A stretch of 32,000 nt of DNA from Paramicrosporidium saccamoebae KSL3 (GCA_002794465.1 MTSL01000143.1:3008-35007); one strand, 5' to 3'. Counted from the first letter of the stretch, positions 3,568-29,772 are shown. Notes: generated by a model not told the origin, from the sequence alone. A program made the numbers and translations.

Positions 3568-3735
3568 AGAGTATGTTGATGGATGAGCTCGATTTTATTA
3601 AAGTATTTATATGGCTTCTTTATAGACAACAGCCCTTCTTAGTATATGCAGACTGGACTGTGGGACCGCTATCTGGGTCAGACTCATCAACAATAAGTAG
3701 ATGCTATTTAACAGTCTTTACTGTCAACCTCGTAA
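3568..3735 (+). repeat. Dispersed intergenic repeat family A, copy 1
   Basis: Collinear by eye with 6735-6895 over about 165 nt, for example TTTTATTAAAGTATT...TGGCTTCTTTATAG...GACCGCTA.CTGGGTC.GAC.CA.CAACAATAAGT.GATGCT.TTTAACA. Confidence 0.9.
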
Positions 3736-3811
3736 TATTTATGGATCGAGACTAAAGGGTCTCTACTATAACACCGCTCACCATATATTAATGTGGGACT
3801 GAAAGATCAGT

Positions 3812-4774
3812 CTAATCAAAGTTTAAAGGAAACAGCCGTTGGATAAGCTCGTAGGAAACCAAGGTAAAGCCAAATTGTGGGGAAGAACGAAGGACACGCG
3901 CCACGCCTCCTTTGAAGAATGCCGCCACCCCCTCCTCACGCAGAATCTTTGAAAATGCATCCGGAATTCCATGGTAGGTCTGCTGGCCTGCACGGGCAAC
4001 GACTTGGAGCCTTGTTTTGATGACGTCGGCTGGAGTGGCCAGATACGCAGCGGGCATACCTGCAATAGCGCCGGCAGCCAGCAACTCGAGGGGGGCCAGC
4101 TTTTTTCCATCTCGGCCTTCGTGAAATACGTCTATTTTGAGATGTGAATACGCAGTAAAGTAGATTGCCGAGAATGGGATGTCTCTTAGGAGACAAGCAC
4201 CGGCGCCCTTATACAGACCACGAATGCCAAGCTCACGACAGATGCTAATGGCGCTTTCTCGCGCGGCTCCAGTTAATCTGGCAGCCTCGCCTTGCACCTG
4301 TAGCCGAATCTTGACAATCTCCAGTGGATTTGTAAAGATGACTTGCGACATTCCTGCAAATCCGCCCGATATGCACTCAGCCGGGACTGATAGTTTCCCA
4401 TTCTTGTCACGCAGCGAGGAGCGCATCAAATCATTCATTGTCAACTTGATGGCCTTCTCGGGTGCCACTCCGACCAATTGGGGCAGTAATCCGCGATATA
4501 ATCCAAGAACGCCCTCATTTCTAATCACTTTGCGAAAGCAGTCCCAGCTGTGCGCGTACAGGATTTCGCTTGCTGCTACTTTTCGCTGGTTCTGCATTCG
4601 GGTTTTTACCAGGTCAATTGGATACACAAAGGTTGCTCCGATGGCGCCGGCGACAGACCCGATAGAGAAGTGATAGATTGACTTTAGTGTCTGCTGACCA
4701 GCGGAGAGCGGGTGGGTGGGTATATTTGTAGTAGACTTTACCATGGCTGGCGGTCCCGCAATTCCGGAACTCAT
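3812..4774 (-). CDS. AGC1: Mitochondrial aspartate/glutamate carrier (AGC1/aralar/citrin family), carrier domain only
   Basis: Three PxDxxKxR-type carrier repeats, plus the AGC-specific strings [26 protein letters not shown] and [20 protein letters not shown]. Confidence 0.88.
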
Positions 4775-4983
4775 AATAACTGCACTTTAGAGCCGGGGAT
4801 GGAAGGACCATTGCCATATGGGATAAAGTCTCATCCTGTTGATGCGCGAATTAATTCATCCCTTAAACGCGAATTGTGTCACTACGTATCAACAGGTCTT
4901 GTCGATCACAATAATGTTCTCCTAGAAATAAGATTTATTGAGATTGCCTTTCAAGAGCAGTCTTTACATTGTTATTAAAGATA

Positions 4984-6318
4984 TTAAGCGGACATCTCCA
5001 TGCTCTCATCATAGACACCCTCATCTTCGGCAGTGGCCTCCTGGTACTGCTGATACTCTGAGACGAGATCATTCATGTTGGACTCGGCTTCCGTGAATTC
5101 CATCTCATCCATACCCTCACCAATGTACCAATGAAGATAGGCCTTGCGACGGAACATGGCGGAGAATTGATCAGACACACGCTTGAACAACTCTTGGATG
5201 GCAGTGGAGTTGCCAATAAACGTGGCGGACATCTTGAATCCCTTGGGGGGAATATCACAAACCGCCGTCTTAACGTTGCTGGGGATCCAGTCCACAAAGT
5301 ACGAGCTGTTCTTTTGTTGCATGGCCAACATCTGCTCATCAACTTCCTTCATTGACACGCGGCCTCGGAAGATGGTCGAGACGGCCAAATACCTGCCATG
5401 ACGAGGATCACTGGCAGCCATCATGTTCTTTGAGTCAAAGAGCTGCTGGGTGAGCTCAGCAACAGTGGACGCACGATATGAAGCAGATCCACGGGGGGTC
5501 AATGGGGCAAAGCCAGCCATGAAAAAGTGGAGACGAGGGAAGGGAACCATGTTCACGGCAAGCTTGCGAAGGTCAGCGTTGAGTTGACCGGGGAAACGCA
5601 GGCAAGTAGTCACACCAGACATGACGGCAGAGACCAAATGATTGAGGTCCCCATAGCCTGGGTTGTTAAGCTTCAGAGTCCTGAAGCAAATGTCGTAGAG
5701 AGCCTCGTTATCAATGCAGAAGGTGCTGTCCGAGTTTTCAACCAGCTGATGGACCGAGAGGGTCGCATTGTAGGGCTCAACTACAGTGTCGGAGACCTTG
5801 GGAGAAGGCACAACGGAAAAGGTGCACATCATGCGATCAGGGAATTCTTCGCGAATCTTGGAAATGAGAAGAGTTCCCATACCAGCACCAGTACCACCTC
5901 CCAAAGAGTGGGTAATCTGGAAACCTTGAAGACACTCGCAGTTCTCGGCTTCCTTGCGGACAACATCGAGGACAGAGTCAACGAGTTCGGCTCCCTCGGT
6001 GTAATGTCCCTTAGCCCAGTTATTTCCGGCTCCATTCTGTCCAAAAACAAAGTTATCAGGGCGGAAGAGAGTTCCGTATGGACCAGCGCGGACGGCATCC
6101 ATGGTGCCGGGTTCCAGATCGACAAGTACAGCACGTGGCACATACTTTCCAGAGGCTGCCTCATTAAAATAGACATTAATGCGCTCCAATTGATTAGGTG
6201 AGTCTCCGTTGTAGACACCACTTGGGTCGATTCCGTGCTCATCAGCAATTACTTCCCAGAACTTGGCACCAATTTGGTTACCGCATTGTCCAGTTTGTAG
6301 ATGAACGATTTCACGCAT
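4984..6318 (-). CDS. TUB2: Beta-tubulin (444 aa), no intron in the CDS
   Basis: MREI N-terminus, GGGTGAG tubulin signature, [11 protein letters not shown], acidic C-terminal tail. Confidence 0.99.
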
Positions 6319-6406
6319 ATCTGCAAAGGATTAGTACGCCAAATTAAGTCTACTGCTGCTGCTGGTAGAGTGGTCACAAGCCCGTTGAGAGAGTTAACCC
6401 GCGCAA

Positions 6407-6412
6407 TTTATA
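6407..6412 (-). promoter_or_regulatory. Probable TATA box of the beta-tubulin gene
   Basis: The minus strand reads CCTATAAATTGCGCGGGTTAAC about 55 nt upstream of the 5'UTR intron donor, in a GC-rich context. Confidence 0.45.
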
Positions 6413-6597
6413 GGTTGCCAGGGCGCGCATTTCCCCGCCAGAACCTGTCCACCAATCGAAGAAAGTCTCCAATTAAATATTTAATGTGCAGATATGAGAG
6501 TATGAAAATGGGTCAAAATTTCACTAAAAGAGTACTAAAACGGTTGCGAGAGCCCCAACAAAAGAGTCGGTTAAATAGAGATAGATGATATGATATG

Positions 6598-6895
6598 GTC
6601 AGTAAAGTATTTGGCATCATTATAGGCCACCACCCTCAATATGACCGGAATGGATTTTAAGATCGCTATCTGGATTGTTACCACCAATCATGAGCGGATA
6701 CTTTTAAGAGAGTCTTTAGCCCAACCTCGGTAAAAGAATCTGTTGATGAGTGAGCTTTGTTTTATTAAAGTATTTGGCTTCTTTATAGGTAGCCATTCTT
6801 AATATAACCAAACTGGCCTGCGAGACCGCTACCTGGGTCGGACCCACCAACAATAAGTGGATGCTGTTTAACAAAATCTTTACTCCAGTCTCAGT
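6598..6895 (+). repeat. Family A, tandem copies 2 and 3
   Basis: About 6598-6738 (diverged) and about 6735-6895. Both start (A/G)TAAAGTATTTGGC..C.TTATAGG and end TCTTTA..CCA..CTC.GTAAAAG. Confidence 0.88.
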
Positions 6896-6992
6896 AAAAG
6901 AGTTTCTACTCCCACCTTAACAGAATTCTTACTCCAGCCTCAGTAAAAGAGTTTCTATTCCCACCGTAATAACAGAACCTTTACTCCCAACC
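6870..6992 (+). repeat. About 50-bp tandem duplication (2.5 copies) of the family A tail
   Basis: AACA.AAT..TTACTCCAG.CTCAGTAAAAGAGTTTCTA.TCCCACC twice, then a partial AACAGAACCTTTACTCCCAACCTC. Confidence 0.85.
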
Positions 6993-7006
6993 TCAAATGT
7001 ACAAAA

Positions 7007-7707
7007 TTATAACAAATCTGGATTTAAATCTAATTCCAACAACGAAAGATCCATGTCATGGTCCTGTGCGACTCTTGATTGTCGGCGTGCCCCGTCTTTG
7101 GTGGTAGGTGCATCGCGACTGACATCTTCCACAACACCAACATTAATGACCTGGAAGAGCCTACTTGATCTCATTAGATCTTCGGTAGGATATGGAGGAC
7201 GATGGAGGACAAGTGGTTGGTCTTGTTGCCATCCCTCGGGCGGGCCAACTGTCAATGACACTCGTTCAGCCAGAGCCAGAATGGTGGGCATATCAAATCC
7301 GTCTGTCTCAATGTGTTGAAGCATTTCTAGCTTTGCTTGCTCCTCCTTTACTTTGGCCTTGGCAGACACGATTGCTGCAAATGCCTGGTCAATCAAGGCT
7401 GATATTTCCTTCTTCCTATTCGACAGCTCTATGTGGAGCTGATGCATCTTTTCCAAATGATTCCGTTGCTCGTTTACTACCAAAATTATCCATCCTTGCT
7501 ATTATGAATACCTTTGCGAAAAGCATCTTGCAATTCCTTGTCCACGGCAAACACTGGGTCCAATTTGCTCAAGAGGTCAGCCTGCGACTCGCCGTCACTC
7601 GGGTTGGCCGTGCGAATATGCTGCATAAACGTCTTTAGTTCGCTCCTAAAGCGCGTAAGCACCGCTTCCACTTGCCGTTGCAACGACAACTGTTCATCGT
7701 TGGACAT
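7007..7707 (-). CDS. MED4: Mediator subunit 4 (about 221 aa), 2 exons
   Basis: Intron 7477-7511 (35 nt, GTATTC...GGTAG) joins AFRK/V-NEQRN in frame. N-terminal coiled coil, then ILALAERVS..PPEGW...RPPYPTEDLMRSSRL, the Med4 C-terminal motif. Confidence 0.8.
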
Positions 7708-7728
7708 GCTCCAGGGTAGTCTGCGTCA

Positions 7729-8064
7729 ATGGCTTCCATGGCGAAGAAGCACAAGCTGTCGGAAGATGTGATTAGCGATAGCGACACTGAGGAGAACCCA
7801 AAAGAGACACCCACTCCCACATCCATGGATAGTTTTCAGAGGAACAGCGATGGCGAAATATACTTTGAATTAACTAGTCGTCGTCGTGTCACTGTCCGCC
7901 GATGGAAGACTAGCACTCTGATTGACATTCGCGAATTTTGGGGCGACGACGGGGATCTAAAGCCGGGCAAAAAGGGCATTTCTCTGACTCTTGATCAATG
8001 GAAGCAGCTACTCAAATGGACTCCCGAAATTGAAGCTTCGATCGCGAAACTTGACTCTAGTTAA
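7729..8064 (+). CDS. SUB1: Transcriptional coactivator PC4/Sub1 (ssDNA-binding)
   Basis: FELTSRRRVTVRRWK..LIDIREFW..GDLKPGKKGISLTLDQW is the PC4 domain. Start is 7729 or 7738. Confidence 0.9.
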   Translation: MASMAKKHKLSEDVISDSDTEENPKETPTPTSMDSFQRNSDGEIYFELTSRRRVTVRRWKTSTLIDIREFWGDDGDLKPGKKGISLTLDQWKQLLKWTPEIEASIAKLDSS

Positions 8065-8194
8065 TTTTGAAAATAAAACTGTAGAAAAGTACTGCATGGT
8101 GAACGATGAACAGGTGCAAATGGGATTTTTCATTAGTCACTGGCACTGCCTATATAGCCGTGGTAGACGTGGTAGACGTGTGATGTAAATGATT

Positions 8195-8305
8195 GATTAG
8201 TTGGGTATTTGAAGGTAATTTCCTAGTTTGGAGAAGAAATACATGCGTGATAGAGTAGATCAATTAGCCGTGTGGTAGAGTGGATCGTTTAGCTAGGCAT
8301 TTTAG
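8195..8305 (+). repeat. Short repeat family B, about 3 imperfect local copies
   Basis: GATTGATTAGTTGGGTAT / GAGTAGATCAATTAGCCG / GAGTGGATCGTTTAGCTAGGCAT; matches 11501-11540. Confidence 0.5.
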
Positions 8306-8520
8306 GACTATTCCCACGCCTCTTGGGAGATCACCAAAGGGCCTATAAATTTATAATAAGAGCCCCCTTGCCTCCCAAATAAAGAGCAGTGATTTACCCA
8401 CCAAGTGACAAGTGCTGGCTATTCATCGGTGGCAGATTTTTCTGTTAGATGGTGTATTGTAGATACGTCATACATCAGTCGCCTACATATTGCAAGGTGG
8501 TGAATTGTACCGGGGCGAGC

Positions 8521-9072
8521 ATGAAGACCTCGCTTTCATCACCACCCTCTGCCTCTCAATCCAGCCAGCTTCCTCCCGTCGAGGAGCTGCAGTCTCGTCG
8601 CGAACAACTCGAAAAAGTGCACCATTATACTGATGCACTTACATTACAGGAGTTGCAAATTCTGGGCGAGTCATTTGTACAACTGAAGCAGGCACAGGAC
8701 CGTTTTGTGCAGAATATCTCTACACTGACTTCCTTAAAATCTGCTCTCCCAGAGCAAGAATTAATGATACCGTTGACATCCTCAGTGTATATCAAAGGAG
8801 TCTTGGCCAATAAGGACAGTGTAACTGTTGACATTGGCACGGGGTATTTTGTCGAAAAGGTTGCCAAGGCGAATATGCCACCTCACGCTATAGGATCTAG
8901 CATCTGCCGATGATTATTATGTACGCAAGGTCAAGTATCTTCAGGAGCAGCTGAACATGCTCGGTCAGGTCATTTCTGAGAAACGTCAGAACATGTCTGG
9001 TATTATTGTTGCATTTGGGCACTAATATTGCTAGTCCTAACTCGCGCACTTCAGGCCAGGCTGCATAAATAA
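8521..9072 (+). CDS. GIM5: Prefoldin subunit 5 (alpha type, about 149 aa), 4 exons
   Basis: Introns 8617-8649 (33 nt), 8860-8893 (34) and 9000-9034 (35). Motif ELMIPLTSSVYIKG...VTVDIGTGYFVEK, continuing after splicing as DLASADDYYVRKVKYLQEQL...ARLHK*. Start codon uncertain. Confidence 0.88.
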
Positions 9073-9111
9073 AGTGGTGGATCTTGTGAGATATTATAGC
9101 TACAGATCAGT

Positions 9112-9237
9112 TTTGTTAAAGTACACAGCGCCTTTATAGGTCGCTACCCTCGACGCGTCGGATTGTGAGATTGCATAAGTGTCGGTCTCACCAATAACGC
9201 CCAAATACTGTTTAACATGTCCCATTAACCAACCTCA
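9112..9237 (+). repeat. Family A, copy 4
   Basis: TGTTAAAGTA..GCGCCTTTATAGG..GCTACCCTC...CGGATTGTGAGAT.GC...TCTCACCAATAAC...TACTGTTTAACA...CCAACCTC. Confidence 0.82.
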
Positions 9238-9249
9238 CAGGTCTAAGTT

Positions 9250-10872
9250 TTATTGTTGAAAATCAGTGGCAAAGTCATAGGCATCTTCAATTTCCATCAT
9301 GTCTGTTGGTTTGGCAGTGCGCTTTTGAGCAGCCTTCTTGGCTTGCTTCAGTTGCTTTTGCCGATTCCGGTTGGCCTGTGGATTGTTCTCTAATTCAGCC
9401 ACCGACATTTTGATCTCGTAGCCGTCATCCGAGGAAGACTTGCCCTTTGAGGTGCTAGCGGCCACCACAAGTTGTGGCGCTTCAGCAGCAACGTCCATTA
9501 CAATGGGCTGCAGACCAGCCAATTCTTCGGCAACATTGGCAAGTACAGTGTCCACTTCCATCTTGACAAGTGATTCCAAATCGAATTCTGGTGCCCAGCT
9601 ACCCACAATGACGGCATTATTGGCAGTGGACGGGATGGCGGGCGGCAAAGTGTAAAATGGAATCTTGCCCTGATTCCAGTCAATGAGGACTGATTTAGCA
9701 GCGGCATCCACGTTGGGGATCCCTCCCTTTTTAAGCTTCCCCTGTCTTCTGGCAATGTGGCACAAGAACTCGTTGGTGTCAGAGAATCTCGGAATGGCGT
9801 AAAGATACATGAGCTGTTCAGGAGCAGCACGCTTAAGGATCAACTCAATGGGGGCCACAGGATCTTCCAGTTGCTCAACTTTCAAACAATTACGGAGGAA
9901 CAGATGGGCAGTCTCACTGCTATCGGAGGGCGTCGCAAAGACAATACCTGGGCAATCCAACAGCTTAATGTTGCGATCAAGGTTGATTTCCTGAGTGACG
10001 GTTGTAACGCCGGGTGTAGCGCCCACCTTGCAAACCTTGGCTCGTTTAAGAGAATTAATCAGACTGCTCTTTCCCACATTAGGATATCCGACAACACCAA
10101 CGCGAATGGAGGTCTTGATATTTAAGCTTCGGCAATAGTTCTTCAGGAGCTGAATAAGCGTATCGGCTCCAAGACACTCGCTCGAGGTCAAGGCGCCGGC
10201 AATCTTCTCGCCAGCGGAAATGCTACCGAGGTTGGTGCGCTGTGTCTGGGTGGAGGCCTTGAAGGCAACAGCAGGATGTTCCCGACGCAGAACGGCAAGC
10301 CATTGTGCAACAATCTCTCTGGGGACCAAGTCAATCTTGTTCAGAACGAATACGATTCTCTTGCGGCCTCCTGTGGCGGCGACCATTTCTTCTACTGCCC
10401 GAACGCGGCATCCAAGCGGATCACGTGCATCCAAAACTGTCAAGATGACATCTGCATTATCAACAACCTGCTTAAACTCGCGATAGAAGGCTCTCTTGGA
10501 TGAATCATAGAATCGGCCGCTTTCTTCAGGTTTGGCAACGGCAGTGTGCTCTTGAGCCTGAACAGCCGCCCGTCTGGCCAGCGAGTTCAGGTCATTATTT
10601 GCAATGGCTATTTGACGCTGCATCTTTTCCTTTTCACGCTCTTCTTGCATTTTGCGGACAAACTCTTCCTTTCCAGGTAGCATAGACGGTATACCCGGAT
10701 CCTTCCGTCCCTTCTTGTGGCCCTTTGATTTTGCGTCTTTAGCAACCTTTCTGTTATGCTCGCGCATCTTCTTGTCAACTTTGGCACGATGGGCGCTGGT
10801 GAAGCGCTTACTTTTGACCTCTACATATCAGATACTGTGAAAAGACCTAATCTTACTTCTTCTCGGAGCCAT
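9250..10872 (-). CDS. NUG1: Nucleolar circularly permuted GTPase Nug1/GNL3 (about 528 aa), 2 exons
   Basis: Intron 10821-10856 (36 nt, GTAAGA...TGTAG) gives the basic N-terminus MAPRRKVKSKRF...KKMREHNRK. G motifs in G4-G1-G3 order: NKID, GYPNVGKSS, DCPG; also LDARDPLG. Confidence 0.92.
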
Positions 10873-10946
10873 TACAAGTTGACCGGGGTGGCGGCCGTAA
10901 GAGTCGTATTCTTTTGACCAGCCCCCATAAATCTTGAATTTATATA

Positions 10947-11438
10947 TTACACTGTCCATAACTTTAGACGAAAAGCATCGGATCCGTTTAGGTAGTAGTT
11001 TGGCAAGCGCTTCTCGCGAATAAAGCCCAGCTTGGCATATAACTTTAGTGCCGTCAGATTTGTGACTTCTGTCTCCAAGACAATCTCATCGGAGCCCTCT
11101 TTGATCATAATTTCGACCAACTGTCCCACGAGACAGATGCCAATCCCGTGGCCTCGACATTGACCCAGAACTGCTAGCATTCCGATATAGCCACGTCGTG
11201 CCGTGCCGTGAAAGCCCACTTTTCCAATTATTACTCCAACAAGCTCGTCTCTTCGCCAGGCCTAAGGTATAAATTATATGCAGGTGTATACGGTCCTGCA
11301 TAAATGCGGGTGGTCACGCAGAAAATAATGATACGTAAAGACTGAATACGGTTCGGACAAGTCCTTTTCGATGAGCTGGCAGATGGGTTCTAGGTCTTTT
11401 TCTTCAAATCCTCTATATGTCACGGTCTCGCCATCCAT
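10947..11438 (-). CDS. MAK3: NatC catalytic N-acetyltransferase Naa30/Mak3 (about 153 aa), 2 exons
   Basis: Intron 11262-11291 (30 nt). DLSEPYSVFTYHYF, RGYIGMLAV..RGHGIG and EIVLETEVTN..ALKLY.KLGF.REKRL..YYLNGSDAFRL match Mak3. Confidence 0.9.
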
Positions 11439-15208: not shown

Positions 15209-15405
15209 CGCAGCGTCTTCTTTATTTGTCGGTTACCTTGTACATGTATTATAGTATCCATCGTACAATAATAACCCAAGATTATTATCAGTAAACAAGG
15301 GGAGACTATCTTGGTGTTGTGTGGTAGGTTGGTGGGGTGGTAGGGTGGGAGTATTACCACGATGATTATAAGGTCTAAATAAAGACCTTGGTGATGAAAA
15401 AATTA

Positions 15406-15520
15406 GTCTGTTAAAGGATGCGGCGTCTTTACAGATCGATATCCTACCCTCAACACACCGGATTGTGGGATCGCATTTCGATCTCACCAATAACAACCAG
15501 GTGCTATTTAACAGACCCCT
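15406..15520 (+). repeat. Family A, copy 5, with a 10-bp terminal inverted repeat
   Basis: Closely matches copy 4 (CGGATTGTG.GAT.GCAT...CG.TCTCACCAATAAC). GTCTGTTAAA at 15406-15415 pairs with TTTAACAGAC at 15507-15516. Confidence 0.82.
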
Positions 15521-15764
15521 TATCCGAATCTCTGGCCCATAGCTATACCATCTCACAGCGTCAATCGGACGACAGGGAACTGTTTATTGCCAGCTGATAT
15601 GGACTCGCCGGTACGCTATCAATATGTCCAAACGTTGAAGAGTCAACATGTCCAAACATTCGAAAGTCTATATTCCATATTCTCCAGCACCCTGCACCCT
15701 GCGCTCAGCTAAACCTTCCAATACTTCACAATAGCACACTAGGCTAGACTCGATTAATCTAAAG

Positions 15765-22209: not shown

Positions 22210-22388
22210 TAATTACAAGCCGTTATAAAGACAATGAAGACGACGGATAAAGCGACTTTTTAGTAATAGTATGTCGCGTAGTGGAGATGATACCACAGAC
22301 TTTGTCATTATAACACAAATCTCGCATGGATCAAACTAAACAAAGCTAAACCAGACAATTACGGCTCTACATCGAATGGCCGGGGCAA

Positions 22389-23783
22389 ATGGCATCCTTG
22401 TTGCTGGGCGACTTGAATGACTATATTCAGCCTTCTGTTGCTTGTGTGAAACCAGGAAGCGAGTTGCCACCTGAGGAAGACTCTAGGAAGGGAAAGCCGG
22501 TGGAGATTAATCTCAACGACTGTCTTGCCTGCTCCGGTTGCATCACATCAGCAGAGACGGTGCTTGTCGCTGAGCAGACGCATCTTCAGCTTTATTCCGT
22601 TCTGGATGAAAACGAGCTGCTTCCTCAGAGTGAAAGACGGGTTGTTGTTGTTTCGCTCTGTCCTTCTACTGGTACAGCTCTTGCAAGACGCTTCAGGTTG
22701 TCGCCTGTTCAGGTTTATCGTAGACTGGTGCATTTTTTCCGGAATGTGCTCCAAGTGTCGCTAGTTTTGGACACGACATTTTTTGCAAACTTTGCCCTGA
22801 GAGAGGCGGCCAGTGAGTTCATAAATACATATCGAGAGAACAAGGATGGCACAATGCCCGTGCTATCTTCAGAGTGTCCTGGTTGGGTTTGTTACGCTGA
22901 AAAGAAGCAACCAAAGCTACTGCCGCAAATCTGTGCGGTCCGCAGCCCGCAGCAGATTGGCGGTGCATTAGTAAAGTCTTATTTCCTGGACCGACTTGAG
23001 GCAGATCGCTCGCTAGAGAGGAGGAACGTTTTCCATGCTGCGGTCATGTCTTGCTACGATAAAAAACTGGAGGCATCTCGAGAAGTTTTTGCCGACAAAG
23101 ATGGAACGAGAGATGTGGATTGTGTTCTGACAACTACGGAGCTATTGGCCATGATTGAAGACCGAGGTCAAGCGACTAATTTTGTCAACCTCCCCGAAGC
23201 GCTATTAGATGAGAATGATCCGTACAAAACGTGGGTCACCTCTAAGGACGGGAGTGTAAGAATGGTGGGCCACGCTGGCAGTAGTGCTGGTGGCTATCTG
23301 TTCTTTATCATGAGAGCCGCAGCGAAAGAACTGTTTGGCATTGATTTGGCAAGTAGTATAGACCTTGATCCCCGTATTACAATTTCTGTGAATCGAAATG
23401 CCGACTATACTGAATATGCTTTGACACGGGAAGACACCACTCTACTCCGATTCGCAGCCGTTTATGGATTCCGAAATATTCAGACGTTTGTACAGAAAAG
23501 CAAGACGAAGCGCATTAATTATCATTTTGTTGAGATCATGGCCTGTCCTGGCGCTTGTCTATTCGGTGGCGGACAGCCCAGTGATGACAAGACTGAGCAC
23601 CTCCGGGAGGAAATGGAAGCGATCCATGCCGATCGTACTGCAGGAGCCGACGCAAATACTACTATTAAAACGATTTACGAGTGGATTAATGAGGAACCAA
23701 CTAGACCAGCGCTCTTGGTAACCTCTTATCGCCCGTTGGAAGAGGTTGCCAAGAAAAAGCCTTTAATAAATGTTCAATGGTAA
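22389..23783 (+). CDS. NAR1: Cytosolic Fe-S cluster assembly factor Nar1/CIAO3 (Fe-hydrogenase-like)
   Basis: DLNDYIQPSVACVKP, DCLACSGCITSAE, SSECPGWVCYAEK, VMSCYDKKLEASR, DCVLTTTEL, EIMACPGAC. Confidence 0.94.
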   Translation: MASLLLGDLNDYIQPSVACVKPGSELPPEEDSRKGKPVEINLNDCLACSGCITSAETVLVAEQTHLQLYSVLDENELLPQSERRVVVVSLCPSTGTALARRFRLSPVQVYRRLVHFFRNVLQVSLVLDTTFFANFALREAASEFINTYRENKDGTMPVLSSECPGWVCYAEKKQPKLLPQICAVRSPQQIGGALVKSYFLDRLEADRSLERRNVFHAAVMSCYDKKLEASREVFADKDGTRDVDCVLTTTELLAMIEDRGQATNFVNLPEALLDENDPYKTWVTSKDGSVRMVGHAGSSAGGYLFFIMRAAAKELFGIDLASSIDLDPRITISVNRNADYTEYALTREDTTLLRFAAVYGFRNIQTFVQKSKTKRINYHFVEIMACPGACLFGGGQPSDDKTEHLREEMEAIHADRTAGADANTTIKTIYEWINEEPTRPALLVTSYRPLEEVAKKKPLINVQW

Positions 23784-23890
23784 AGCCAAAGCTCGGCCGG
23801 GGTAGGGGTATCATTAGACTCGTACTTTGACAGGCGTTATAAGCCCTCTCTTGTAGTGACGTTGTCTATTCTTTACAAACTTGTAATACA

Positions 23891-25711
23891 ATGAGTGGTG
23901 GTATTCCTCCTATGATACCAGTAGAGACGTCTTATCACTCACAGAAGAGTGGTGAAATGGACTCGGTAGAGGCGCCTCACCATCCACAGGAGAATGGTGG
24001 GGCTTCCCCTATAGACCCAGTAGAGGCGTCTCATTATCCAAAGGATCCTGACCCAAATACCACAAACCAAACACATCTCAGCCGTCCTCTTGTCCCCCGG
24101 ATGGGTGATGACCTGGAGCGTCGCAAGAATGAGATTGTGCAGGAAATGCTGCTTCGGATACGACCGTTCCTCGGACCAAACGGCCAACTGAAGGCCGATG
24201 CAAACTTTGACGAATATGCCAAGCTGATGTTTGGAGAGGTGCACTTTGTACAGCGAACACTATTGCTCACGGTTGTGATGAGTTCAACAGAGGCGCAGGT
24301 TTGGAAGGCGATTAGCGAGAGTCGGCATCTGGTAGAGGCGTTGGTGGAGTGGCTCACAGAATGTGCCAAGGATGATGGTCCGCTTCTGATTAAAATCTTG
24401 GAAGTACTTGGTCGGATGCCGTTGACGGTGGACCAGCTGGTGGAGCATCGTCTGGGCAAGGTTGTAAAGAAACTTGGTGGCTCAACCAAGCCCGAAATTC
24501 GAGAGAAAGCAACGTTATTGTGTGATTCGTGGACAAAATTGGCCAGACAGGAAGACTCGCGAAGGAAAAGTTGTAGTGATGCAGAACTTGTCAAGAAGGA
24601 CAAAATCGAAACATCCCGGCGCCCATCTACAGATGTTACCAGGCTGGCGGCGGTGTCAACAAAGGAGAGTGCCGTTGCCAACAAGTCATTGTTCAATGAG
24701 ACACCAGCCATCAAAACTAGAGCTGCGCAAATATTGGAACGAGCAGCAAGGGGAGGCGAGGCTTTGAAAATAAGCAGCCGACCATTGTCAGCGGACGACA
24801 TTCACAGGGAAAAGAAGAGACAACTGTATTTGCAAGAGGCAAATCTATCGCCGACTAGCACGGCCACAGCTGAAGAATCAGAGGAACCGGAGCGGAAACG
24901 GGTGAAAAAATCGGTCCACTTTGCCCCCGAAGATAGACTTGTTCAAGTTTACTACTTTGAACCACCAGATGACGATTATTATTATCACGTTGACGGCCAA
25001 TATCATCGTATAGATTTATTCAAAGATACTAATGATACCCTTATAGATGGTGATTTGCATGAAATGAATAGAAATGAGGGATCCTACGCATTTAAGCAGA
25101 TGGCGTTGGCCATGGAACCTGAATGCGATTGGAAGGCCCCACCAAAGCTCCACCTGTCTCCCGAGTTGATTGCCAGAGATGGGCCAAAGAGTTTAGAAAA
25201 GGACGCTCAAGAACTACGAGAAAAGACTGCCTTGTCGGCAGTCTACTTTAAGCCCGAAGATGTCCCACCGTCGCCCTCTGAAAACATGGTCGATGCAGGA
25301 GACATGACGCCAGGCCACCAAAGCAAAAAGATTCCCCTCAAAGATGTTGATGGTCGCGTCACATCAGTGATCCGGTTTGTAACAAAACCAGCCGGAGTAG
25401 AGCCATCGGGGACGGGTCCCGATATTCTCAAAACACTCTTGAAAGATCCCAGCGCTCTTCAAGATTTACTAAAGAATGTTCCGCCAACGACCAAATCCCC
25501 CAAGATGCCAGCATATCCTCCCCCTCCAATGTTCCTGCCCCCTCCCCTGATGGGGATGCCGCCACCCCCCTTTGGTATGCCACCGATGGCATTTCCGGGC
25601 CCGTTCCCCTTTGCTCCGCCTCAAAAGGCACCTTGTAAGTTTTACAAACGAGGCAAACCAAACAGCTGTCGACTTGGGACGTCTTGTCAATTCTATCATG
25701 CTGGGCATTAG
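23891..25711 (+). CDS. PNUTS/PPP1R10 (Ref2/Ppn1)-like PP1 regulatory subunit
   Basis: TFIIS N-terminal-like helical domain (LPLTVDQL..HRLGKVVKKL...W), RVxF-type PP1 docking motif KKSVHF followed by LVQVYYFE, the WKAP...QELRE..LSAVY....PPSP block, a Pro-rich tail and a C-terminal CCCH zinc finger. Confidence 0.8.
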   Translation: MSGGIPPMIPVETSYHSQKSGEMDSVEAPHHPQENGGASPIDPVEASHYPKDPDPNTTNQTHLSRPLVPRMGDDLERRKNEIVQEMLLRIRPFLGPNGQLKADANFDEYAKLMFGEVHFVQRTLLLTVVMSSTEAQVWKAISESRHLVEALVEWLTECAKDDGPLLIKILEVLGRMPLTVDQLVEHRLGKVVKKLGGSTKPEIREKATLLCDSWTKLARQEDSRRKSCSDAELVKKDKIETSRRPSTDVTRLAAVSTKESAVANKSLFNETPAIKTRAAQILERAARGGEALKISSRPLSADDIHREKKRQLYLQEANLSPTSTATAEESEEPERKRVKKSVHFAPEDRLVQVYYFEPPDDDYYYHVDGQYHRIDLFKDTNDTLIDGDLHEMNRNEGSYAFKQMALAMEPECDWKAPPKLHLSPELIARDGPKSLEKDAQELREKTALSAVYFKPEDVPPSPSENMVDAGDMTPGHQSKKIPLKDVDGRVTSVIRFVTKPAGVEPSGTGPDILKTLLKDPSALQDLLKNVPPTTKSPKMPAYPPPPMFLPPPLMGMPPPPFGMPPMAFPGPFPFAPPQKAPCKFYKRGKPNSCRLGTSCQFYHAGH

Positions 25712-25785
25712 TGTATCTTTTTATTTTTCCGTAACTTCGTAACAATGATTCTGTATGAGACGATCCACACTTGCGATAGTTCAGT

Positions 25786-25965
25786 TCTGTCAGAAATAAT
25801 CTATAACTAACAATTGGGCACATGATAATATATGCTTCCATGTTAAGCCTGTCTGAGATAATCTATAACAATTTGGTACACGATAATCTATCACGACTGT
25901 TACACGATAATCTATCACGACTGTTACACGATAATCTATCACGACTGTTACACGGTAATATATAA
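25786..25965 (+). repeat. 24-bp minisatellite with degenerate flanking units
   Basis: TACACGATAATCTATCACGACTGT three times perfectly (25877-25948) plus a partial copy. It is preceded by two related ~65-bp units containing ATAATCTATAAC..AATT.GG.ACA.GATAAT.TAT. Confidence 0.92.
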
Positions 25966-26044
25966 CTTTATGACAGTGTCACTTGAGGTAGTCTATAATT
26001 CTATGATGAAACAGTTCACATCCAGAGCCAAGATTGTGCATGGC

Positions 26045-26317
26045 TTAGAACTGTGCTAGTCCGCGACCTAGGGCCGTATTAATCCAGGACTCAAAGCCAA
26101 AGGTGTTCCAAAATTGAGGCTGGGACTGTTCCTGAGCCGAGGCCCAAACTATCCATGGCTCGAAGCCAAAGCTATTCCAGACTTGAGACTTGCGCCCTTC
26201 CTGGCTCGAGGCCGAAGCTATCCATGGCTCAAAGCCAAAACTTTTTCTAACTCGCAGCTGGGGTTCTGTACGACTCAAAACGGGAGCTATCCATGATTCA
26301 AAGCCAAAAGCATTCAT
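26045..26317 (-). CDS. Candidate 90-aa repeat protein, 4 x 23-aa units with FGFE[S/P]WI
   Basis: Uninterrupted ORF across the 69-bp tandem array. Substitutions in the conserved block are mostly synonymous in this frame. It could equally be a non-coding array. Confidence 0.35.
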   Translation of the reverse strand: MNAFGFESWIAPVLSRTEPQLRVRKSFGFEPWIASASSQEGRKSQVWNSFGFEPWIVWASAQEQSQPQFWNTFGFESWINTALGRGLAQF

Positions 26318-26327
26318 GACTCAAAGT
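26082..26327. repeat. 69-bp period tandem repeat (3 full units plus a partial fourth)
   Basis: ATCCA(T/G)G(G/A)(C/T)TC(A/G)AAGCCAAA starts at 26082, 26151, 26220 and 26289. Confidence 0.92.
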
Positions 26328-26479
26328 GCGAATCGTTTAGTGTCAGTGCAAACCACAGAGTTTACTCAAAGCGGCCTCCGCCAACCCCTGTAAGCCCCAT
26401 ATAATGAGCCCCGGCGTCCGGGGTAGTCGGATTCCTTCCGAGAGACCGACAGAGAATCTTTATTCCTCACAAATCTAGT

Positions 26480-27559
26480 ATGACTAAACCTGCCCCCGTT
26501 AAAGTAAGGATATCCCAAGTTGCATCTAACGTTCTCCAGTCTGACAAGAAAGCTGCTGCCGCCAAGGCCGAGCTGAAGAAGCTCGCCGCTCAGGCCCCCG
26601 CCTCCGTCGACAAGAAGAAGGCATCCAAGAAGGTAGTCTCATCCTCTGAGGAGGATAGTGAAATTGAGAGCTCTGAGGAGGAGAGTGAGGACGAGCCCGT
26701 TGCCAAGAAGGCTGCCTCTAAGAAGGTTGCCAAGAAGGCCGACACTTCCAGCGACGAAGAGTCGATGGTAGACTCTGATGGTTCTGACGAGATGGATTCT
26801 GATGATGTTGACTCTGATGCGGTCGATTCTGATGAGATGTCTGAGGAAGACTCTGCTTCAGAGGCCGAGGCACCCAAGGGCAAGAAGGCCTGGGCTGTCC
26901 CCAAGGACGACTCTGCATCTGAGGCATCCGAATCCGAGGCCAACTCTGAATCCGAGGCTGAGGAAGAGGACGAGGAGGAGGAGGAATCCGACTCTGATGA
27001 TGAGCCCGCCACCAAGAAGCGCAAGGATACCACTGCTGGTAACGATGCCAAGAAGCCCAAACACGATAACACTCTCTCCCAAGAATCTGCCACTCTCTTT
27101 GTAGCCGGACTTGCCTGGGCCTGTGACGGAGATATGCTTTCCGGCGAATTCAGCCATCTTGAGGGATTCCAAGCTGCTCGCGTAGTGAGCGACCGTGAGA
27201 CTGGCCGCTCCCGTGGTTTCGGTTACGCCGAGTTTGACTCTGCTGAGAATGCCCGTGCTGCTTTGGAGGAGATGAACCAGAAGGACATTGGTGGTCGTCA
27301 GATCCGCGTTGACTTTGCTGGTCCCCGCCCCGAGGGTGGAAACCGTGACGGAGGTAGCCGTGGCGGGTTCCGTGGAGGTTTCCGCGGAGGACGTGGTGGA
27401 GATCGTGGAGGTTTCCGCGGTGGTCGTGGAGGTGAGCGCGGTGGATTCCGTGGTGGACGCGGTGGAGATCGTGGAGGTTTCCGTGGCGGTCGTGGTGGAT
27501 TCCGCGGAGGACGTGGTGGAACTCAATTCCAAGGAAAGCGCACTACTTTTGACGATTAG
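26480..27559 (+). CDS. NSR1: Nucleolin/Nsr1-like nucleolar protein (acidic-Ser tract, one RRM, RGG tail)
   Basis: K/A-rich and SDE-rich N-terminus, RRM with LFVAGL and RGFGYAEF, GGRGGFRGG repeats, ending QGKRTTFDD. Probable in-frame intron 26504-26539 (GTAAGG..TCTAAC..TCCAG). Confidence 0.85.
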   Translation: MTKPAPVKVRISQVASNVLQSDKKAAAAKAELKKLAAQAPASVDKKKASKKVVSSSEEDSEIESSEEESEDEPVAKKAASKKVAKKADTSSDEESMVDSDGSDEMDSDDVDSDAVDSDEMSEEDSASEAEAPKGKKAWAVPKDDSASEASESEANSESEAEEEDEEEEESDSDDEPATKKRKDTTAGNDAKKPKHDNTLSQESATLFVAGLAWACDGDMLSGEFSHLEGFQAARVVSDRETGRSRGFGYAEFDSAENARAALEEMNQKDIGGRQIRVDFAGPRPEGGNRDGGSRGGFRGGFRGGRGGDRGGFRGGRGGERGGFRGGRGGDRGGFRGGRGGFRGGRGGTQFQGKRTTFDD

Positions 27560-27644
27560 TTTTCCTTTCAGTTAAAGTTTGACCATAGACTGCAGCATGT
27601 TCCTGATCTAAGAATACACCCATTTATATCGATTTATTGGTTCT

Positions 27645-28071
27645 TTAGGCGTGTTGCTGCTGGCAGGCTTTCATCATGTCCATATAGTCCTGGCAAGTTC
27701 CGACCTGATTGTTATTCTGGTCCATGCATTGCAGGAACAGCCTGGAATATTCTTGACACTGCGGCGCTACATCGCGCGGAGTATACGCAGGTGCAGCTTG
27801 CTCTACCGGCGCCGCCTCAGAGCCCCCGGAGAATAAGTCCATGGCCATACGACCGGCCACATGACCAACAGCGACACCTGCGGCAGTTGTTGCAATTTGG
27901 CTCAACAAGCCTTCGCGCTGTGGAACCTGCACCGGCGCTGCTGCCGCAGCTGGTGCAGCTGCAGTGTGATTTTGGCGGCGTGGCGCAGAGCTATCATCTT
28001 AGAGACCAGGTTGGAGCTTACGTAGAGACGGGCTTGGGTGCGGGGCGACTTGAGCGTGAATTGCGAGGCAT
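27645..28071 (-). CDS. MIX17: Mitochondrial twin CX9C protein Mix17/CHCHD2-10 family (131 aa), 2 exons
   Basis: Intron 27991-28021 (31 nt, GTAAGC...GATAG). Basic N-terminus MPRNSRSSRPAP, GLLSQIATTAAGVAVGH helix, and a CX9C-CX9C motif at the C-terminus. Confidence 0.88.
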
Positions 28072-28310
28072 TGTATTGTCGGGGATTTCGACCAGGGATG
28101 TTCAGAGTGTAGTCAGTCCATGAAAATCCGAGATCCATATCCCTATTCTGTTCATAATGTCCACATATTCTGTTAATGGGGCCCAAATATCCTGTCCATG
28201 GTCCATGGTAGGCTGACCGTCAATACTTTACCAATACATAAAACGACATAATATATTATTGGTATCCAGGCACGGCCACTAGTTGACGATCGTATCGAGT
28301 TTATTGGTAG

Positions 28311-28425
28311 CCTTGTTAAACAGTATCCGTTTATCCTTGGCGATCCCAAGCCAGATATATCTGCCATCTCACAATTCGGCATGTTAGTAGGGATAACGGC
28401 CTTTGAAGGCGTCTTTGACAAAGAA
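28311..28425 (-). repeat. Family A, copy 6 (inverted)
   Basis: The reverse complement reads GACGCCTTCAAAGGCCG...CCGAATTGTGAGATGGC..TATCTGG...GATAAACGGATACTGTTTAACAA. Confidence 0.7.
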
Positions 28426-28576
28426 ACAATCTCGCTCGCTAACAATATCCAATCAAAACATTTTTCCTATAAATCTAATCCGGTGCGCTGAGAGTAATCA
28501 TTTATAGACAGAGGATGTCGTTTTCCTCAAACTTTGACACGGTCTTTATCTTTGTCCATCTGCAAATACACCAGGG

Positions 28577-29456
28577 ATGAGTCGGATCCATGAGATTGGT
28601 GTCAACGCCAATCATTGCGGGTATTGTCGAAAAGATGGCGAAACGTCCATCTCGTATATGCTACATGCACAACGTTTGACGGCTCATGACTACCAGGAGC
28701 TGATAGACCAAGGCTGGCGTCGAAGCGGCAATATCATCTATCTGCCTTTGTATCAAGCAACATGCTGTAAGCTCCAGTCAATAAGACTGAATAGCAGTGT
28801 ATTCGAAATGACAAGGTCGCAGCGAAAATGTCTGAAAGCGCTGTATCACTATCTGGATATCCCTCTTCCATCCGCAGTCTCTAGGATAGAGTAGCCCTCT
28901 CTTTTATTCATATTATAGATTCCTGGATGACACACTAAGGATTCTGAATGACTGTGCGGCTTACCAGTGTAGTATAAAGCCTGCTTCATTTTCTGAAGAA
29001 GTTTACCAAATTTATAGTCGATATCAGGTGGCTGTGCACGGCGATGATCCGTCTGAAGTATCCAGGAAAGGGTTTACGCAATTCCTCTGTTCATCGCCTT
29101 TGGTGGGCTTTGAACGATATGGGACATTTCATGTTCATTACAGCCTGCGTGGACAGCTAATGGCGGTCAGTGTCATTGATATCCTCCCAAACTGCATCTC
29201 CTCCGTCTATCTATTCTAGTATCCCTCCGCTGGTAAGCTAATCTTTAGCGATCCTGACTATCACCATCTCTCATGGGGCACCCTTTCTGCTCTTCTAGAA
29301 ATCGGTCTGGTTCGTACTATTGCAGCTGGCAGTCCCAATCTCCATTTTTATTATCTTGGCTACTACTTGCACGATTGTCCCAAACTTGCATACAAAGGTC
29401 GCTTCCAACCATCGGAGATTCTCAATCGAGACTCGAGCGAGTGGCTGCCCCTATGA
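28577..29456 (+). CDS. ATE1: Arginyl-tRNA--protein transferase Ate1 (273 aa), 3 exons
   Basis: Introns 28891-28918 (28 nt) and 29219-29248 (30 nt). Motifs CGYC, YQELIDQGWRRSG..IY.P....CC, YSRYQVAVHGD, GTFHVHY, AVSVIDILPNCISSVYLFY/DPDY, LGYYLHDCPKLAYK. Confidence 0.9.
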
Positions 29457-29489
29457 GTGTATAAAATTGTGAAGTCTGTGCTTATAATA

Positions 29490-29772
29490 AAGATCCCATT
29501 GGGCGGTCTCCGCTTATAGCTGATGGTCCCCACCCGTAAAATGACCCCAATGGCCTTGGTGAGGGTGGATATATATCAAACGCCACATACTGTGGTAAAA
29601 GAACTCTGTTCACCAGGAGACCCTTTCAAGTAGTATCCGCTTATAATGGTGCCTCTAATAATGATATACTAGCGTACTAACAAGCCCTGCTAGATAGTAC
29701 CCGCTTGTGATTAGCGGTCCCAGCCCAGATATTGAGGATGGCGGCCTATAAAGGCGTCACAGACTTTAACTA
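29490..29772 (-). repeat. Family A, copy 7 plus degenerate tandem fragments (inverted)
   Basis: The reverse complement of 29690-29772 reads GTTAAAGTCTGTGACGCCTTTATAGGCCGCCATCCTCAATAT..GGGACCGCTA..CACAAGCGGGTACTA. The segment 29490-29655 carries further fragments (CACCATTATAAGCGGATACTA). Confidence 0.7.

Follow-up and report, generated by a model that had tools for sequence, protein, structure and literature searches.

The compact genomes of the parasites Nosema bombycis and N. antheraeae as well as N. ceranae carry MITEs that are short, non-coding and mostly species-specific, and one of these families has TIRs starting with TGT and target-site duplications (TSDs) of 5–6 bp (He et al., 2015, PMC4405373). 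In Amphiamblys sp. (Metchnikovellidae), a MITE-like intergenic repeat has inverted repeats; it lacks a canonical TSD, and a transposase was not found (Mikhailov et al., 2016, PMC5381614). The repeat described here (family A) lies in a 32-kb stretch, hereafter the window, of contig MTSL01000143.1 (GCA_002794465.1) of Paramicrosporidium saccamoebae, an amoeba parasite of the Rozellomycota; the GNL3 gene of the window is PSACC_02105, and the window’s mitochondrial-carrier protein was found on this public contig (35,007 bp) and on no other. On balance, we regard its members as old, decaying copies of an undescribed short, non-coding and non-autonomous mobile element, MITE- or solo-LTR-like in kind. 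Akin to the TGT termini and 5–6-bp TSDs of the Nosema family, the core of the unit runs from TGTTG to TTTAACA between direct repeats of 5–6 nt. However, the copies are 46–70% identical over the whole unit, as opposed to the ≥90% that defines the Nosema families (a comparison by description only), and they are enclosed by a palindromic outer frame that is conserved, and have no known autonomous partner. The Amphiamblys repeat is likewise found at several intergenic sites in an early-branching relative with a compact genome, with inverted repeats and no transposase found, but its imperfect inverted repeat measures 54 bp and encloses a centre of 15–180 bp, whereas those of P. saccamoebae are nested and 6–11 nt long in a unit that is mostly non-palindromic.

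Family A comprises at least eight copies at six loci in the window, all in intergenic spacers: seven recovered by profile search and one that is degenerate but full-length. A weak fragment and two 49-nt mini-units from which the core is deleted lie in the same spacers (Table 1). The copies take up ~4.5% of the window. For the profile search, nhmmer was run on the 32-kb window with a profile built without each copy in turn (leave-one-out), and in the rest of the 32 kb there was no match better than E ~1 besides c9, c8a and pieces of the mini-units. Self-comparison by blastn paired c1 with c3 (79% over 159 nt, E 1e-31), c2 with c3 (72% over 136 nt, E 3e-13) and c4 with c5 (72% over 122 nt, E 1.5e-10). 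The dispersed family proposed in the initial annotation is therefore real, with seven copies recovered by the leave-one-out profiles, and its coordinates, its consensus and the intergenic location of all copies were borne out; a ‘possible truncated copy’ placed at 28172–28245 is not supported, as it matched no profile or covariance model at E≤10.

Table 1. Members of family A in the window, with their cores, flanking direct repeats and gene context.
Feature	Position	Strand	Core	nhmmer match (E); leave-one-out for c1–c7	Direct repeats	Spacer	Evidence and remarks
c1, full unit	3562–3741	+	3574–3713 (TGTTG...TTTAACA)	3565–3727 (5e-24)		LSM gene (+, stop 3443) / mitochondrial-carrier gene (-, stop 3812)	nhmmer, covariance model 86.7 bits; boundaries from direct-repeat analysis; outer inverted repeat CAATAAAGA/TCTTTACTG
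c2, full unit	6560–6737	+	6569–6709	6597–6729 (6e-22)	AGAGTC/AGAGTC	beta-tubulin start (6318, -) / Med4 stop (7007, -)	nhmmer, covariance model; head-to-tail with c3
c3, full unit	6730–6903	+	6741–6873	6734–6893 (4e-30)	AGAATC/AAAATC	as c2	nhmmer, covariance model
Two core-deleted mini-units, 49-nt period	6894–6995	+		6917–6953 (0.004–0.4)		array ends 11 nt from Med4 stop codon	self-comparison repeat search, nhmmer, TRF (6868–6969, period 49, 2.1 copies, 88% matches); TAAAAGAGTT-TCTACTCCCACCTTAACA-GAATTCTTACT, each then CCAGYCTCAG or CCCAACCTCA
c4, full unit	9068–9247	+	9078–9217	9104–9236 (2e-19)		prefoldin stop (9025, +) / GNL3 stop (9250, -)	nhmmer, covariance model 106.7 bits; ends 2 nt from GNL3 stop codon
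c5, full unit	15378–15543	+	15389–15513	15380–15534 (9e-23)	AGACCT/AGACCC	casein-kinase-1 stop (15208, +) / oxysterol-binding-protein stop (15765, -)	nhmmer, covariance model; inner inverted repeat perfect, 10 nt
c6, full unit, degenerate ends	28290–28454	-	28314–28444	28309–28445 (7e-15)		CHCH-domain gene (-) / ATE1 (+, start 28577), divergent	nhmmer, covariance model 73.8 bits
c9, degenerate full-length copy	29481–29627	-		29481–29626 (3e-6 to 1e-2, profiles without c9)		starts 27 nt past ATE1 stop codon	nhmmer, alignment
c8a, weak 3'-terminal fragment, tentative	29615–29686	-		(0.015–0.6)		between c7 and c9	nhmmer at these E-values only, sequence reading
c7	29679–29798	-	29688–29787	29682–29797 (4e-15)	AGGGTT/AGGGCT	ATE1 stop (~29457) / lipase start (29897)	nhmmer, covariance model; internal deletion of ~32 nt, left arm of hairpin 2 gone

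The full unit has no reading frame and is ~165–185 nt long rather than 110 nt, because the similarity reaches ~30–45 nt beyond GTTAAAG...CTTTAAC on either side. The core (100–141 nt) has the form 5'-TG...CA-3' and a 6-nt terminal inverted repeat, TG being found at its start in c1, c3, c4, c5, c6, c7 and c9 and CA at its end in c1 and c3–c7. Inverted repeats are nested, with an outer pair A[AG]TAAAGA/TCTTTAYT (7–9 nt), a pair TGTTGA/TTAACA at the core ends and an inner pair GTTAAAG/CTTTAAC (7–11 nt), and the unit holds two internal hairpins. The short inverted repeats noticed in the initial annotation hold (10/10 in c5, GTCTGTTAAA/TTTAACAGAC), but the GTTAAAG/CTTTAAC pair, there taken for the ends of the element, is internal, and since the similarity continues past each nested pair any terminal inverted repeat of the element itself is putative. 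The outer frame is conserved, palindromic and poly(A)-signal-like, with A[AG]TAAAG on one side and CTTTAYT plus CCAACCTC on the other, and no unoccupied copy of it was found in the window. Where no clear target-site duplication had been seen, a TSD-like signal is present: the direct repeats that flank the core are alike within a copy and unlike between copies, 38 of 60 positions matching within copies vs ~26 of 60 between them (permutation p 0.0013, with the register chosen post hoc). The sequence outside these direct repeats is conserved between copies, unlike what is expected of a canonical insertion. Some parts of the unit are better conserved than others, and decay and rearrangement take the form of local tandem duplication, an internal deletion, a fragment and the core-deleted mini-units.

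Solo LTRs and terminal-repeat retrotransposons in miniature (TRIMs) begin with 5'-TG and end with CA-3', bear a short inverted repeat at these termini and are flanked by a target-site duplication of 4–6 bp. The units described here have a TG...CA core between putative TSDs, contain TATA-like and AATAAG motifs and are intergenic in a compact genome, but at ~100–141 nt they would be unusually short for an LTR, their flanks past the putative duplication are conserved, and the right flank offers no credible tRNA primer-binding site, TGGG alone being shared between copies. The 32-nt spacer between c2 and c3 contains a purine-rich stretch (GTAAAAGAA), but nothing complementary to a tRNA 3' end. In the window, neither the primer-binding site and polypurine tract expected beside paired copies nor the gag/pol of a full-length LTR relative was found. 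The bacterial REP/BIME and the Correia elements of Neisseria, which are intergenic units of ~100–150 bp with inverted repeats and hairpins that sometimes act as terminators, resemble family A in size, intergenic site, inverted repeats, hairpins and a frequent position between convergent genes; P. saccamoebae, however, is a eukaryote, and there is no homology. Bacterial and archaeal genomes scanned for the pattern showed nothing but chance matches.

The flanking genes were compared with loci of uncultured relatives (L002/L003, L031, L055–L058, L060 and L062; protein identity 56–74%), which share with the window the orders E1-OSBP-CK1-...-GNL3-prefoldin-PC4-Med4-tubulin-MCF-LSM-ABC and CHCH-ATE1-lipase of their genes. 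Neither nhmmer nor the covariance model found a copy in these loci, and L002, L031, L055, L057 and L062 contain no dispersed repeats of their own. The search for empty sites suggested at the outset thus found all six element-bearing spacers element-free in syntenic relatives when spacers are compared as wholes, though not base-precisely, because the relatives’ spacers are unalignable. The GNL3 and prefoldin stop codons, for example, are 4 nt apart in L002 vs 224 nt, c4 included, in the window, and the distance from the ATE1 stop to the lipase start is ~120 nt in L057 vs 439 nt, c7–c9 included; at site C, the spacers of three relatives match that of the window in length (241–293 nt). As the family is absent from homologous spacers in the same gene order, it would have spread in the P. 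saccamoebae lineage, most likely after its split from the nearest sampled relatives.

Searches for coding content and known families were negative. No transposase domain occurs in any window ORF tested, in agreement with the initial annotation, and neither an integrase, a reverse transcriptase or gag/pol nor an autonomous element sharing the termini of family A was found in the window. A protein-coding remnant was rejected, as column identity by codon position (0.74, 0.83 and 0.79) shows no third-position excess and stop codons close every frame in most copies. Rfam 15 gave 0 matches on the window at E≤1, and single copies searched at E≤10 matched no family, the best scores (snR76, 17 bits where 55 are needed; SNORD38, 16 bits where 44 are needed) being far under gathering; described Rfam families, including self-cleaving ribozymes and snoRNAs, were rejected on these grounds. 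A SINE derived from tRNA, 5S or 7SL was likewise rejected, since ARAGORN found no tRNA-like sequence and there is neither a 5S, 7SL or tRNA match in the same Rfam searches nor an A-rich or simple-repeat tail.

Several observations count for mobility: the family is multicopy and confined to spacers, its copy-specific direct repeats resemble a target-site duplication (in a register set post hoc), and it shows no coding signal, known RNA family or tRNA. Its absence from the six syntenic spacers counts in the same direction, as do the deletion derivatives and fragments, which elements typically leave as they decay, and the precedents of Nosema and Amphiamblys among related compact genomes. Units of 120–180 nt also conform to the description of MITEs as short (<800 bp), non-coding and AT-richer than the genome (GC 0.48 in the window and 0.37–0.51 in the repeat units). 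The copies would have arisen by transposition in trans, through an enzyme of the DDE transposase or integrase type making staggered cuts of 5–6 bp, and insertions may have survived chiefly at gene 3' ends because those spacers tolerate them. Against a mobile element stand the lack of a transposase, integrase or reverse transcriptase in the window, the conservation between copies of sequence beyond the putative TSDs, a direct-repeat register picked after the data were seen, and the imprecision of the empty sites together with the equally long spacers at site C. Uneven conservation and compensatory changes in hairpin 1 could moreover reflect selection acting on every copy and not on master copies. 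The genome paper, which reports just 0.53% repeats (PMC5701793), also counts against it; either the repeat family was overlooked there or this contig is out of the ordinary. Of the three options first put forward, the MITE-like one is thus favoured, though unproven, the structured RNA loses ground and the cis-element keeps a small share of the probability.

Some mobile elements of compact genomes are target-specific, such as Ty3 at Pol III start sites, the Dictyostelium TREs near tRNA genes and rice Micron in TA microsatellites. It is possible, if rather doubtful, that the core of family A inserts specifically into the centre of the palindromic poly(A)-signal-like motif, which would be comparable to these cases and would represent a further ‘safe-haven’ targeting strategy; the putative target is seen, however, as one unoccupied motif in one relative and in the anatomy of nine occupied ones. 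To our knowledge, such a target is undescribed.

The units could instead be host cis-elements, i.e. bidirectional 3'-end (poly(A)/termination) cassettes duplicated or gene-converted between spacers and kept by selection, a reading we consider unlikely. Whichever strand enters the unit, A[AG]TAAAG comes first and a G/T-rich stretch next, and these ends sit at the usual place of the poly(A)-like hexamer of this genome: the terminal hexamer is the first or among the first AATAAA-like sequences after the stop of prefoldin (+43), Med4 (+22), ATE1 (+29), MCF (+90), LSM (+120) and CK1 (+170), and element-free genes often have a hexamer within ~50 nt (tubulin +45, PC4 +8, CHCH +7). Of the four clear convergent gene pairs, three carry a unit, and this, like the uneven conservation and the compensatory changes in stems, also fits such a cassette. 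The same gene pairs, however, do without the unit in the relatives, several copies (c4, c5, c6, c7 and c9) are truncated or degenerate at their ends, c6 sits between two 5' ends, and three units are stacked after ATE1; nor, short of transposition, do we know of a mechanism by which a cassette of 170 nt would be copied into unlinked spacers, which we count against this reading.

Small structured non-coding RNA genes of ~110 nt, with a closing stem and two hairpins, are less probable still. Across eight copies 79% of the closing stem and 83–94% of hairpin 1 are paired (counts inflated by deriving the structure from one copy), there are compensatory changes at four pairs, with a covariation score matched by 4 of 500 shuffles, and c4 (z = -1.9) and c5 (z = -3.6) are more stable than shuffled sequence. 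Stability nevertheless varies widely between copies, five of seven being no more stable than shuffles (z -0.6 to +0.5), and hairpin 2 is just 70% paired, with one helix at just 38%. An RNA gene is also at odds with the lack of an Rfam match even for copies taken alone, with similarity well beyond the folded part, with the loss of half of hairpin 2 in c7 and the presence of decayed copies, and with the lack of a homologue in the relatives’ sequence examined.

We give equally little credence to a dispersed minisatellite, in which a tandem unit of 170–180 nt would have formed in several spacers through slippage, through unequal exchange or from circular DNA that inserted anew, with no transposase. 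Head-to-tail arrays at two loci (c2-c3-mini-mini and c7-c8a-c9) and the few bases resembling a neighbouring unit’s end on both sides of single copies would be explained in this way, but at four of the six loci there is just one unit, both strands and unlinked sites are occupied, and copy-specific flanking direct repeats are unexpected from array dynamics. Chance likeness among AT-rich spacers, which the initial annotation had left for a formal alignment to reveal and in favour of which nothing was found, is refuted by the significance of the similarity (leave-one-out E-values in the 32-kb search and blastn E-values down to 1e-31) and by a 21-base pattern that matched three copies vs 0 in 100 shuffles.

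Self-comparison of the window recovered the intergenic repeat family proposed in the initial annotation, and every one of seven copies (c1-c7) was found again when the profile was built on the remaining six (7/7, E about 5e-24 to 4e-15); in these leave-one-out searches of the 32 kb, unrelated window sequence gave nothing better than E ~1. A covariance-model search returned its own training copies and nothing else. The family is real, undescribed and lineage-specific; it is not mentioned in the genome paper (PMC5701793), nor in the later papers examined. Further pieces beyond the seven copies are listed in the table, whereas a truncated copy proposed at 28172-28245 was not supported by profile or covariance-model searches. 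The inverted repeat previously read as the ends of the element turned out to be internal: similarity runs 30-45 nt past it, so that the unit, with its putative termini, measures ~165-185 nt. The family covers ~4.5% of the window, with no copy inside a gene and with units arranged head to tail at two loci. Pairwise identity between copies is 46-70%, which argues that the family is old.

Positions (nt) of features in the window and in relatives' loci, with the direct repeats of individual units
Feature	Sequence	Position	Strand	Left direct repeat	Right direct repeat
Copy c2	window			AGAGTC	AGAGTC
Copy c3	window			AGAATC	AAAATC
Copy c5	window			AGACCT	AGACCC
Copy c7	window			AGGGTT	AGGGCT
Mini-unit 1	window			AGAGTT	AGAATT
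Two 49-nt mini-units (beyond the seven copies)	window	6894-6995			
Degenerate full copy (beyond the seven copies)	window	29481-29627			
Weak fragment (beyond the seven copies)	window	29615-29686			
G/T-rich stretch left of c1	window	3513-3540			
G/T-rich stretch left of c5	window	15324-15352			
Mitochondrial-carrier protein, 320 aa	window (contig MTSL01000143.1, 35,007 bp; assembly GCA_002794465.1)	3812-4774	-		
24-nt tandem repeat	window	25874-25966			
ORF with FGFE[SP]WI repeats	window	26045-26317	-		
69-nt tandem repeat	window	26082-26315			
RGG/FRGG repeat array	window	27353-27517			
ATE1	window	28577-29457			
48-nt tandem repeat, then palindrome	L059	1290-1445			
~88-nt segment in three tandem copies	L004	2240-2480			
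561-aa ORF, first paralogue	L055	5732-7417			
561-aa ORF, second paralogue	L055	7991-9676			

Read in the orientation of the initial annotation, the unit consists of a CCCAAC-like motif (bracketed in our scheme), A[AG]TAAAG, a direct repeat of 5-6 nt, the core, the same 5-6-nt direct repeat again, TTTAC(T) and CCAACCTC[GA]. The left portion of the core runs TGTTGATGAG... GTTAAAGTA and then hairpin 1 (GGCnnC TTTATA GGnnGCC), and the right portion comprises CCAYCCTCAA, hairpin 2, CACCAAYAATAAG and ...CTGTTTAACA. The core, whose bounds read TGTTGATG...TTTAACA, starts with TG, ends with CA and carries a 6-nt inverted repeat (TGTTGA/TTAACA). The mini-units, which are decay products of the unit, retain the two outer arms and the direct repeats but, of the core, no more than its final 18 nt. 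The G/T-rich stretches are found 25-50 nt left of c1 (GGGTGAGAT x3) and c5 (GGTAGGTTGGTGGGGTGGTAGGGTGGGAG); in both, the CCAACCTC-like motif that closes the right side of the element occurs as its reverse complement, and they may represent an outermost inverted repeat.

Comparison with relatives provided the most informative result. These relatives, found by GNL3 and lipase protein searches (JGI, ENA and Logan assemblies), are uncultured and show 56-83% identity. The order E1-OSBP-CK1-CDP-OH transferase-NAT-GNL3-prefoldin-PC4-Med4-tubulin-carrier-LSM-ABC is as in the window in L002/L003, L031 and L062 and partly in L060, as is the order CHCH-ATE1-lipase in L055/L056 and ATE1-lipase in L057/L058 (all handles denoting loci of uncultured relatives). 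No copy was detected in these syntenic loci with either the profile or the core covariance model, and L002, L031, L055, L057 and L062 contain no dispersed repeats of their own. The window's spacers measure 556 nt between OSBP and CK1 (148-246 nt in relatives), 368 nt between carrier and LSM (66-221 nt), 688 nt between Med4 and tubulin (256-372 nt) and 439 nt between ATE1 and lipase (~120 nt in L057). Between the GNL3 and prefoldin stops the window has 224 nt, L002 has 4 nt and L031, L060 and L062 have 241-293 nt; as three relatives match the window here, length alone is not decisive at this site. Judged from these sequences, the family is a gain of the P. saccamoebae lineage, its absence being scored per whole spacer, since the spacers are unalignable and empty sites are therefore not base-precise.

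The direct repeats are alike within a copy and unlike between copies (see table), with 38 of 60 positions matching within copies versus a between-copy expectation of ~26 (permutation p 0.0013, register picked post hoc). Such within-copy matching resembles the signature of a target-site duplication, as read in a register picked after the sequences were seen. Outside the direct repeats the sequence is likewise conserved between copies, in the form of two palindrome halves, A[AG]TAAAG...CTTTAYT, and this conservation beyond putative target-site duplications is a puzzle. No unoccupied palindrome of this form occurs in the window. In L059, a contig of the closest lipase relative (74% identity, JGI 3300063079), AATAAAGAAAAAAGTCTTTACT lies 183 nt past the lipase stop and equals both outer arms of the window's element without the core. 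After the lipase gene of that contig comes first a 48-nt tandem repeat (2.2 copies) and then this palindrome. CCAACCTC was rejected as a genome-wide target motif because it is not enriched (32 matches versus 26 expected); three of its five exact matches are element ends.

Taken together, these data are best explained, and with somewhat better than even confidence, if the copies are decayed remains of a MITE- or solo-LTR-type mobile element that was non-autonomous. An enzyme acting in trans and making 5-6-bp staggered cuts would have mobilized such an element, which would have persisted mostly beside the 3' ends of genes. The sequences show the family, its anatomy, its decay products and its absence from the relatives; transposition, the enzyme and the termini are inferred. 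The family resembles MITEs in size, in its non-coding nature and in its presence/absence pattern at the level of the whole spacer. There are no transposases among the window's genes, in agreement with the initial annotation. Among the closest known systems are MITE families of Nosema (in one of them the TIRs start with TGT and the TSDs measure 5-6 bp; PMC4405373) and a MITE-like intergenic repeat of Amphiamblys, which lacks both a TSD and a transposase (PMC5381614).

We put forward, tentatively and at rather low probability, that the target of the 100-141-nt TG...CA core is the exact midpoint of a palindromic poly(A)-signal motif able to form a hairpin (A[AG]TAAAG-nnnn-CTTTAYT) at the 3' ends of genes, insertion being accompanied by a 5-6-bp duplication. 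Three observations support this proposal: (i) the direct repeats are copy-specific within a conserved frame; (ii) AATAAAGAAAAAAGTCTTTACT is unoccupied in L059 at its position past the lipase stop; (iii) the terminal A[AG]TAAA hexamers sit where the genome usually places the first AATAAA-like hexamer downstream of a stop (at +43 for prefoldin, +22 for Med4 and +29 for ATE1; in the element-free genes, tubulin +45, PC4 +8 and CHCH +7). To our knowledge, no palindromic poly(A)-signal motif has been described before as a 'safe-haven' insertion target. If the proposal is correct, each flanking gene would keep its own hexamer, and spacers would lengthen in an otherwise shrinking genome.

The distribution of units relative to genes also bears on an unlikely alternative, a bidirectional 3'-end cassette maintained by the host. 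Units occupy three of four clear convergent pairs; among same-direction spacers the figure is two of ~8 and among divergent ones one of four, counts too small for a test. Read in the reverse of the initial annotation's orientation, they lie past the stop codon of a gene running the same way at five loci. As either orientation follows a co-oriented stop in convergent spacers, the informative cases come down to two, and a rule placing units always downstream of a co-oriented gene was rejected: agreement in 2/2 informative same-direction spacers is not significant, and c6 lies between two 5' ends. A terminator role or targeting of the poly(A) motif, if real, would be relevant to the way compact eukaryotic genomes separate their convergent genes.

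Folding was considered with respect to a family of genes for small structured RNAs, which we regard as improbable. In eight copies, pairing amounts to 79% for the closing stem and 83-94% for hairpin 1; four pairs show compensatory changes, and the covariation score is equalled by 4/500 shuffles. Hairpin 2 is 70% paired and half of it is missing in c7, and only c4 (z -1.9) and c5 (z -3.6) fold better than shuffled sequence, the other five copies doing no better. This pattern agrees with a palindromic element in which the source copies experienced some constraint; it falls short of proving an RNA gene. At E<=1 the window had no Rfam family match, single copies searched at E<=10 gave chance-level matches and nothing better, and ARAGORN found no tRNA-like sequence. 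A dispersed minisatellite is an equally improbable source of the family.

Several other readings were discarded. A coding remnant was suggested by similar peptides in one reverse frame (VKQYPLIVG, ATYKGAVYFNK), yet a third-position excess is absent and every frame is broken by stops in most copies. By-eye resemblances to 5S rRNA-derived, tRNA-derived, snoRNA (prompted by a TGATGA box in the family), H/ACA and hammerhead sequences were unsupported by Rfam or ARAGORN. An introner or 3'-UTR intron does not suit a window in which the ATE1 introns measure just ~30-42 nt and genes are free of copies; a Helitron-like element is opposed by the lack of a 5'-TC or CTRR-3' end and by a hairpin that does not lie close to a terminus; and as for a primer-binding site adjoining the core, only TGGG is common to the flanks. 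Metagenome, prokaryotic-genome and viral contigs scanned for the pattern yielded 26, 16 and 7 matches, respectively, which are only chance, none being confirmed by profile at E<=0.1.

The genome of P. saccamoebae (MTSL00000000), an intranuclear amoeba parasite of the Rozellomycota, was published as almost repeat-free (0.53%, mostly simple; PMC5701793). In light of the ~4.5% contributed to the window by one family, the repeat library used in that study probably overlooked diverged short elements. Were the same density to extend over the whole genome, the family would account for part of the gap in spacer length between P. saccamoebae and its more compact relatives, and would provide a lineage-specific marker, open to dating, for a sparsely sampled clade that branches at the base of Microsporidia.

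Otherwise, the window carries housekeeping genes that are ordinary for a eukaryote: ABC transporter, LSM, mitochondrial carrier, beta-tubulin, Med4, PC4, prefoldin, GNL3 (PSACC_02105 [Paramicrosporidium saccamoebae], by protein-search self-match), N-acetyltransferase, CDP-alcohol phosphatidyltransferase, casein kinase 1, oxysterol-binding protein, E1, NAR1, a Med26-domain protein, an RRM/RGG protein, a CHCH protein, ATE1 and a class-3 lipase. The mitochondrial-carrier protein is recorded on MTSL01000143.1 alone, and exact-match queries with further window proteins met no recorded contig. Recorded gene models of the window's contig (L001) merge the neighbours ABC transporter and LSM, N-acetyltransferase and GNL3, and CDP-OH transferase and casein kinase 1. 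The ATE1 introns, as read from the sequence, are ~42 and ~30 nt long (GTCTCT...ATTATAG and GTATCC...CTTTAG). The spacer after the Med26-domain gene contains a 24-nt tandem repeat, TGTTACACGATAATCTATCACGAC, in ~4 copies of 91-98% identity, and a 69-nt tandem repeat in four copies lies within an ORF in which FGFE[SP]WI recurs every 23 residues; this ORF, without a Pfam match, may be a gene or a non-coding repeat. The RGG/FRGG array lies at the C-terminus of the acidic, nucleolin/Nsr1-like RRM protein.

A lipase protein search found no P. saccamoebae paralogue, and a search with an OLE1 fragment gave three matches, none of them on a long contig. Over >20 kb, uncultured relatives with GNL3 identity as low as 56% share the gene order of P. 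saccamoebae (L002, L003, L031, L055-L058, L060 and L062), which shows that public metagenomes and Logan assemblies hold a diverse, syntenic Paramicrosporidium-like clade. In L004, from the closest GNL3 relative (83%, Logan DRR438482), the triplicated ~88-nt segment includes GNL3 coding sequence (KMEVETVLANVAE) and could be either genuine or an artefact of assembly. L055 carries between lipase and MYG1 two paralogous 561-aa ORFs that have no Pfam match, are absent at the equivalent place in L057 and share 72.5% nucleotide identity over 495 nt.
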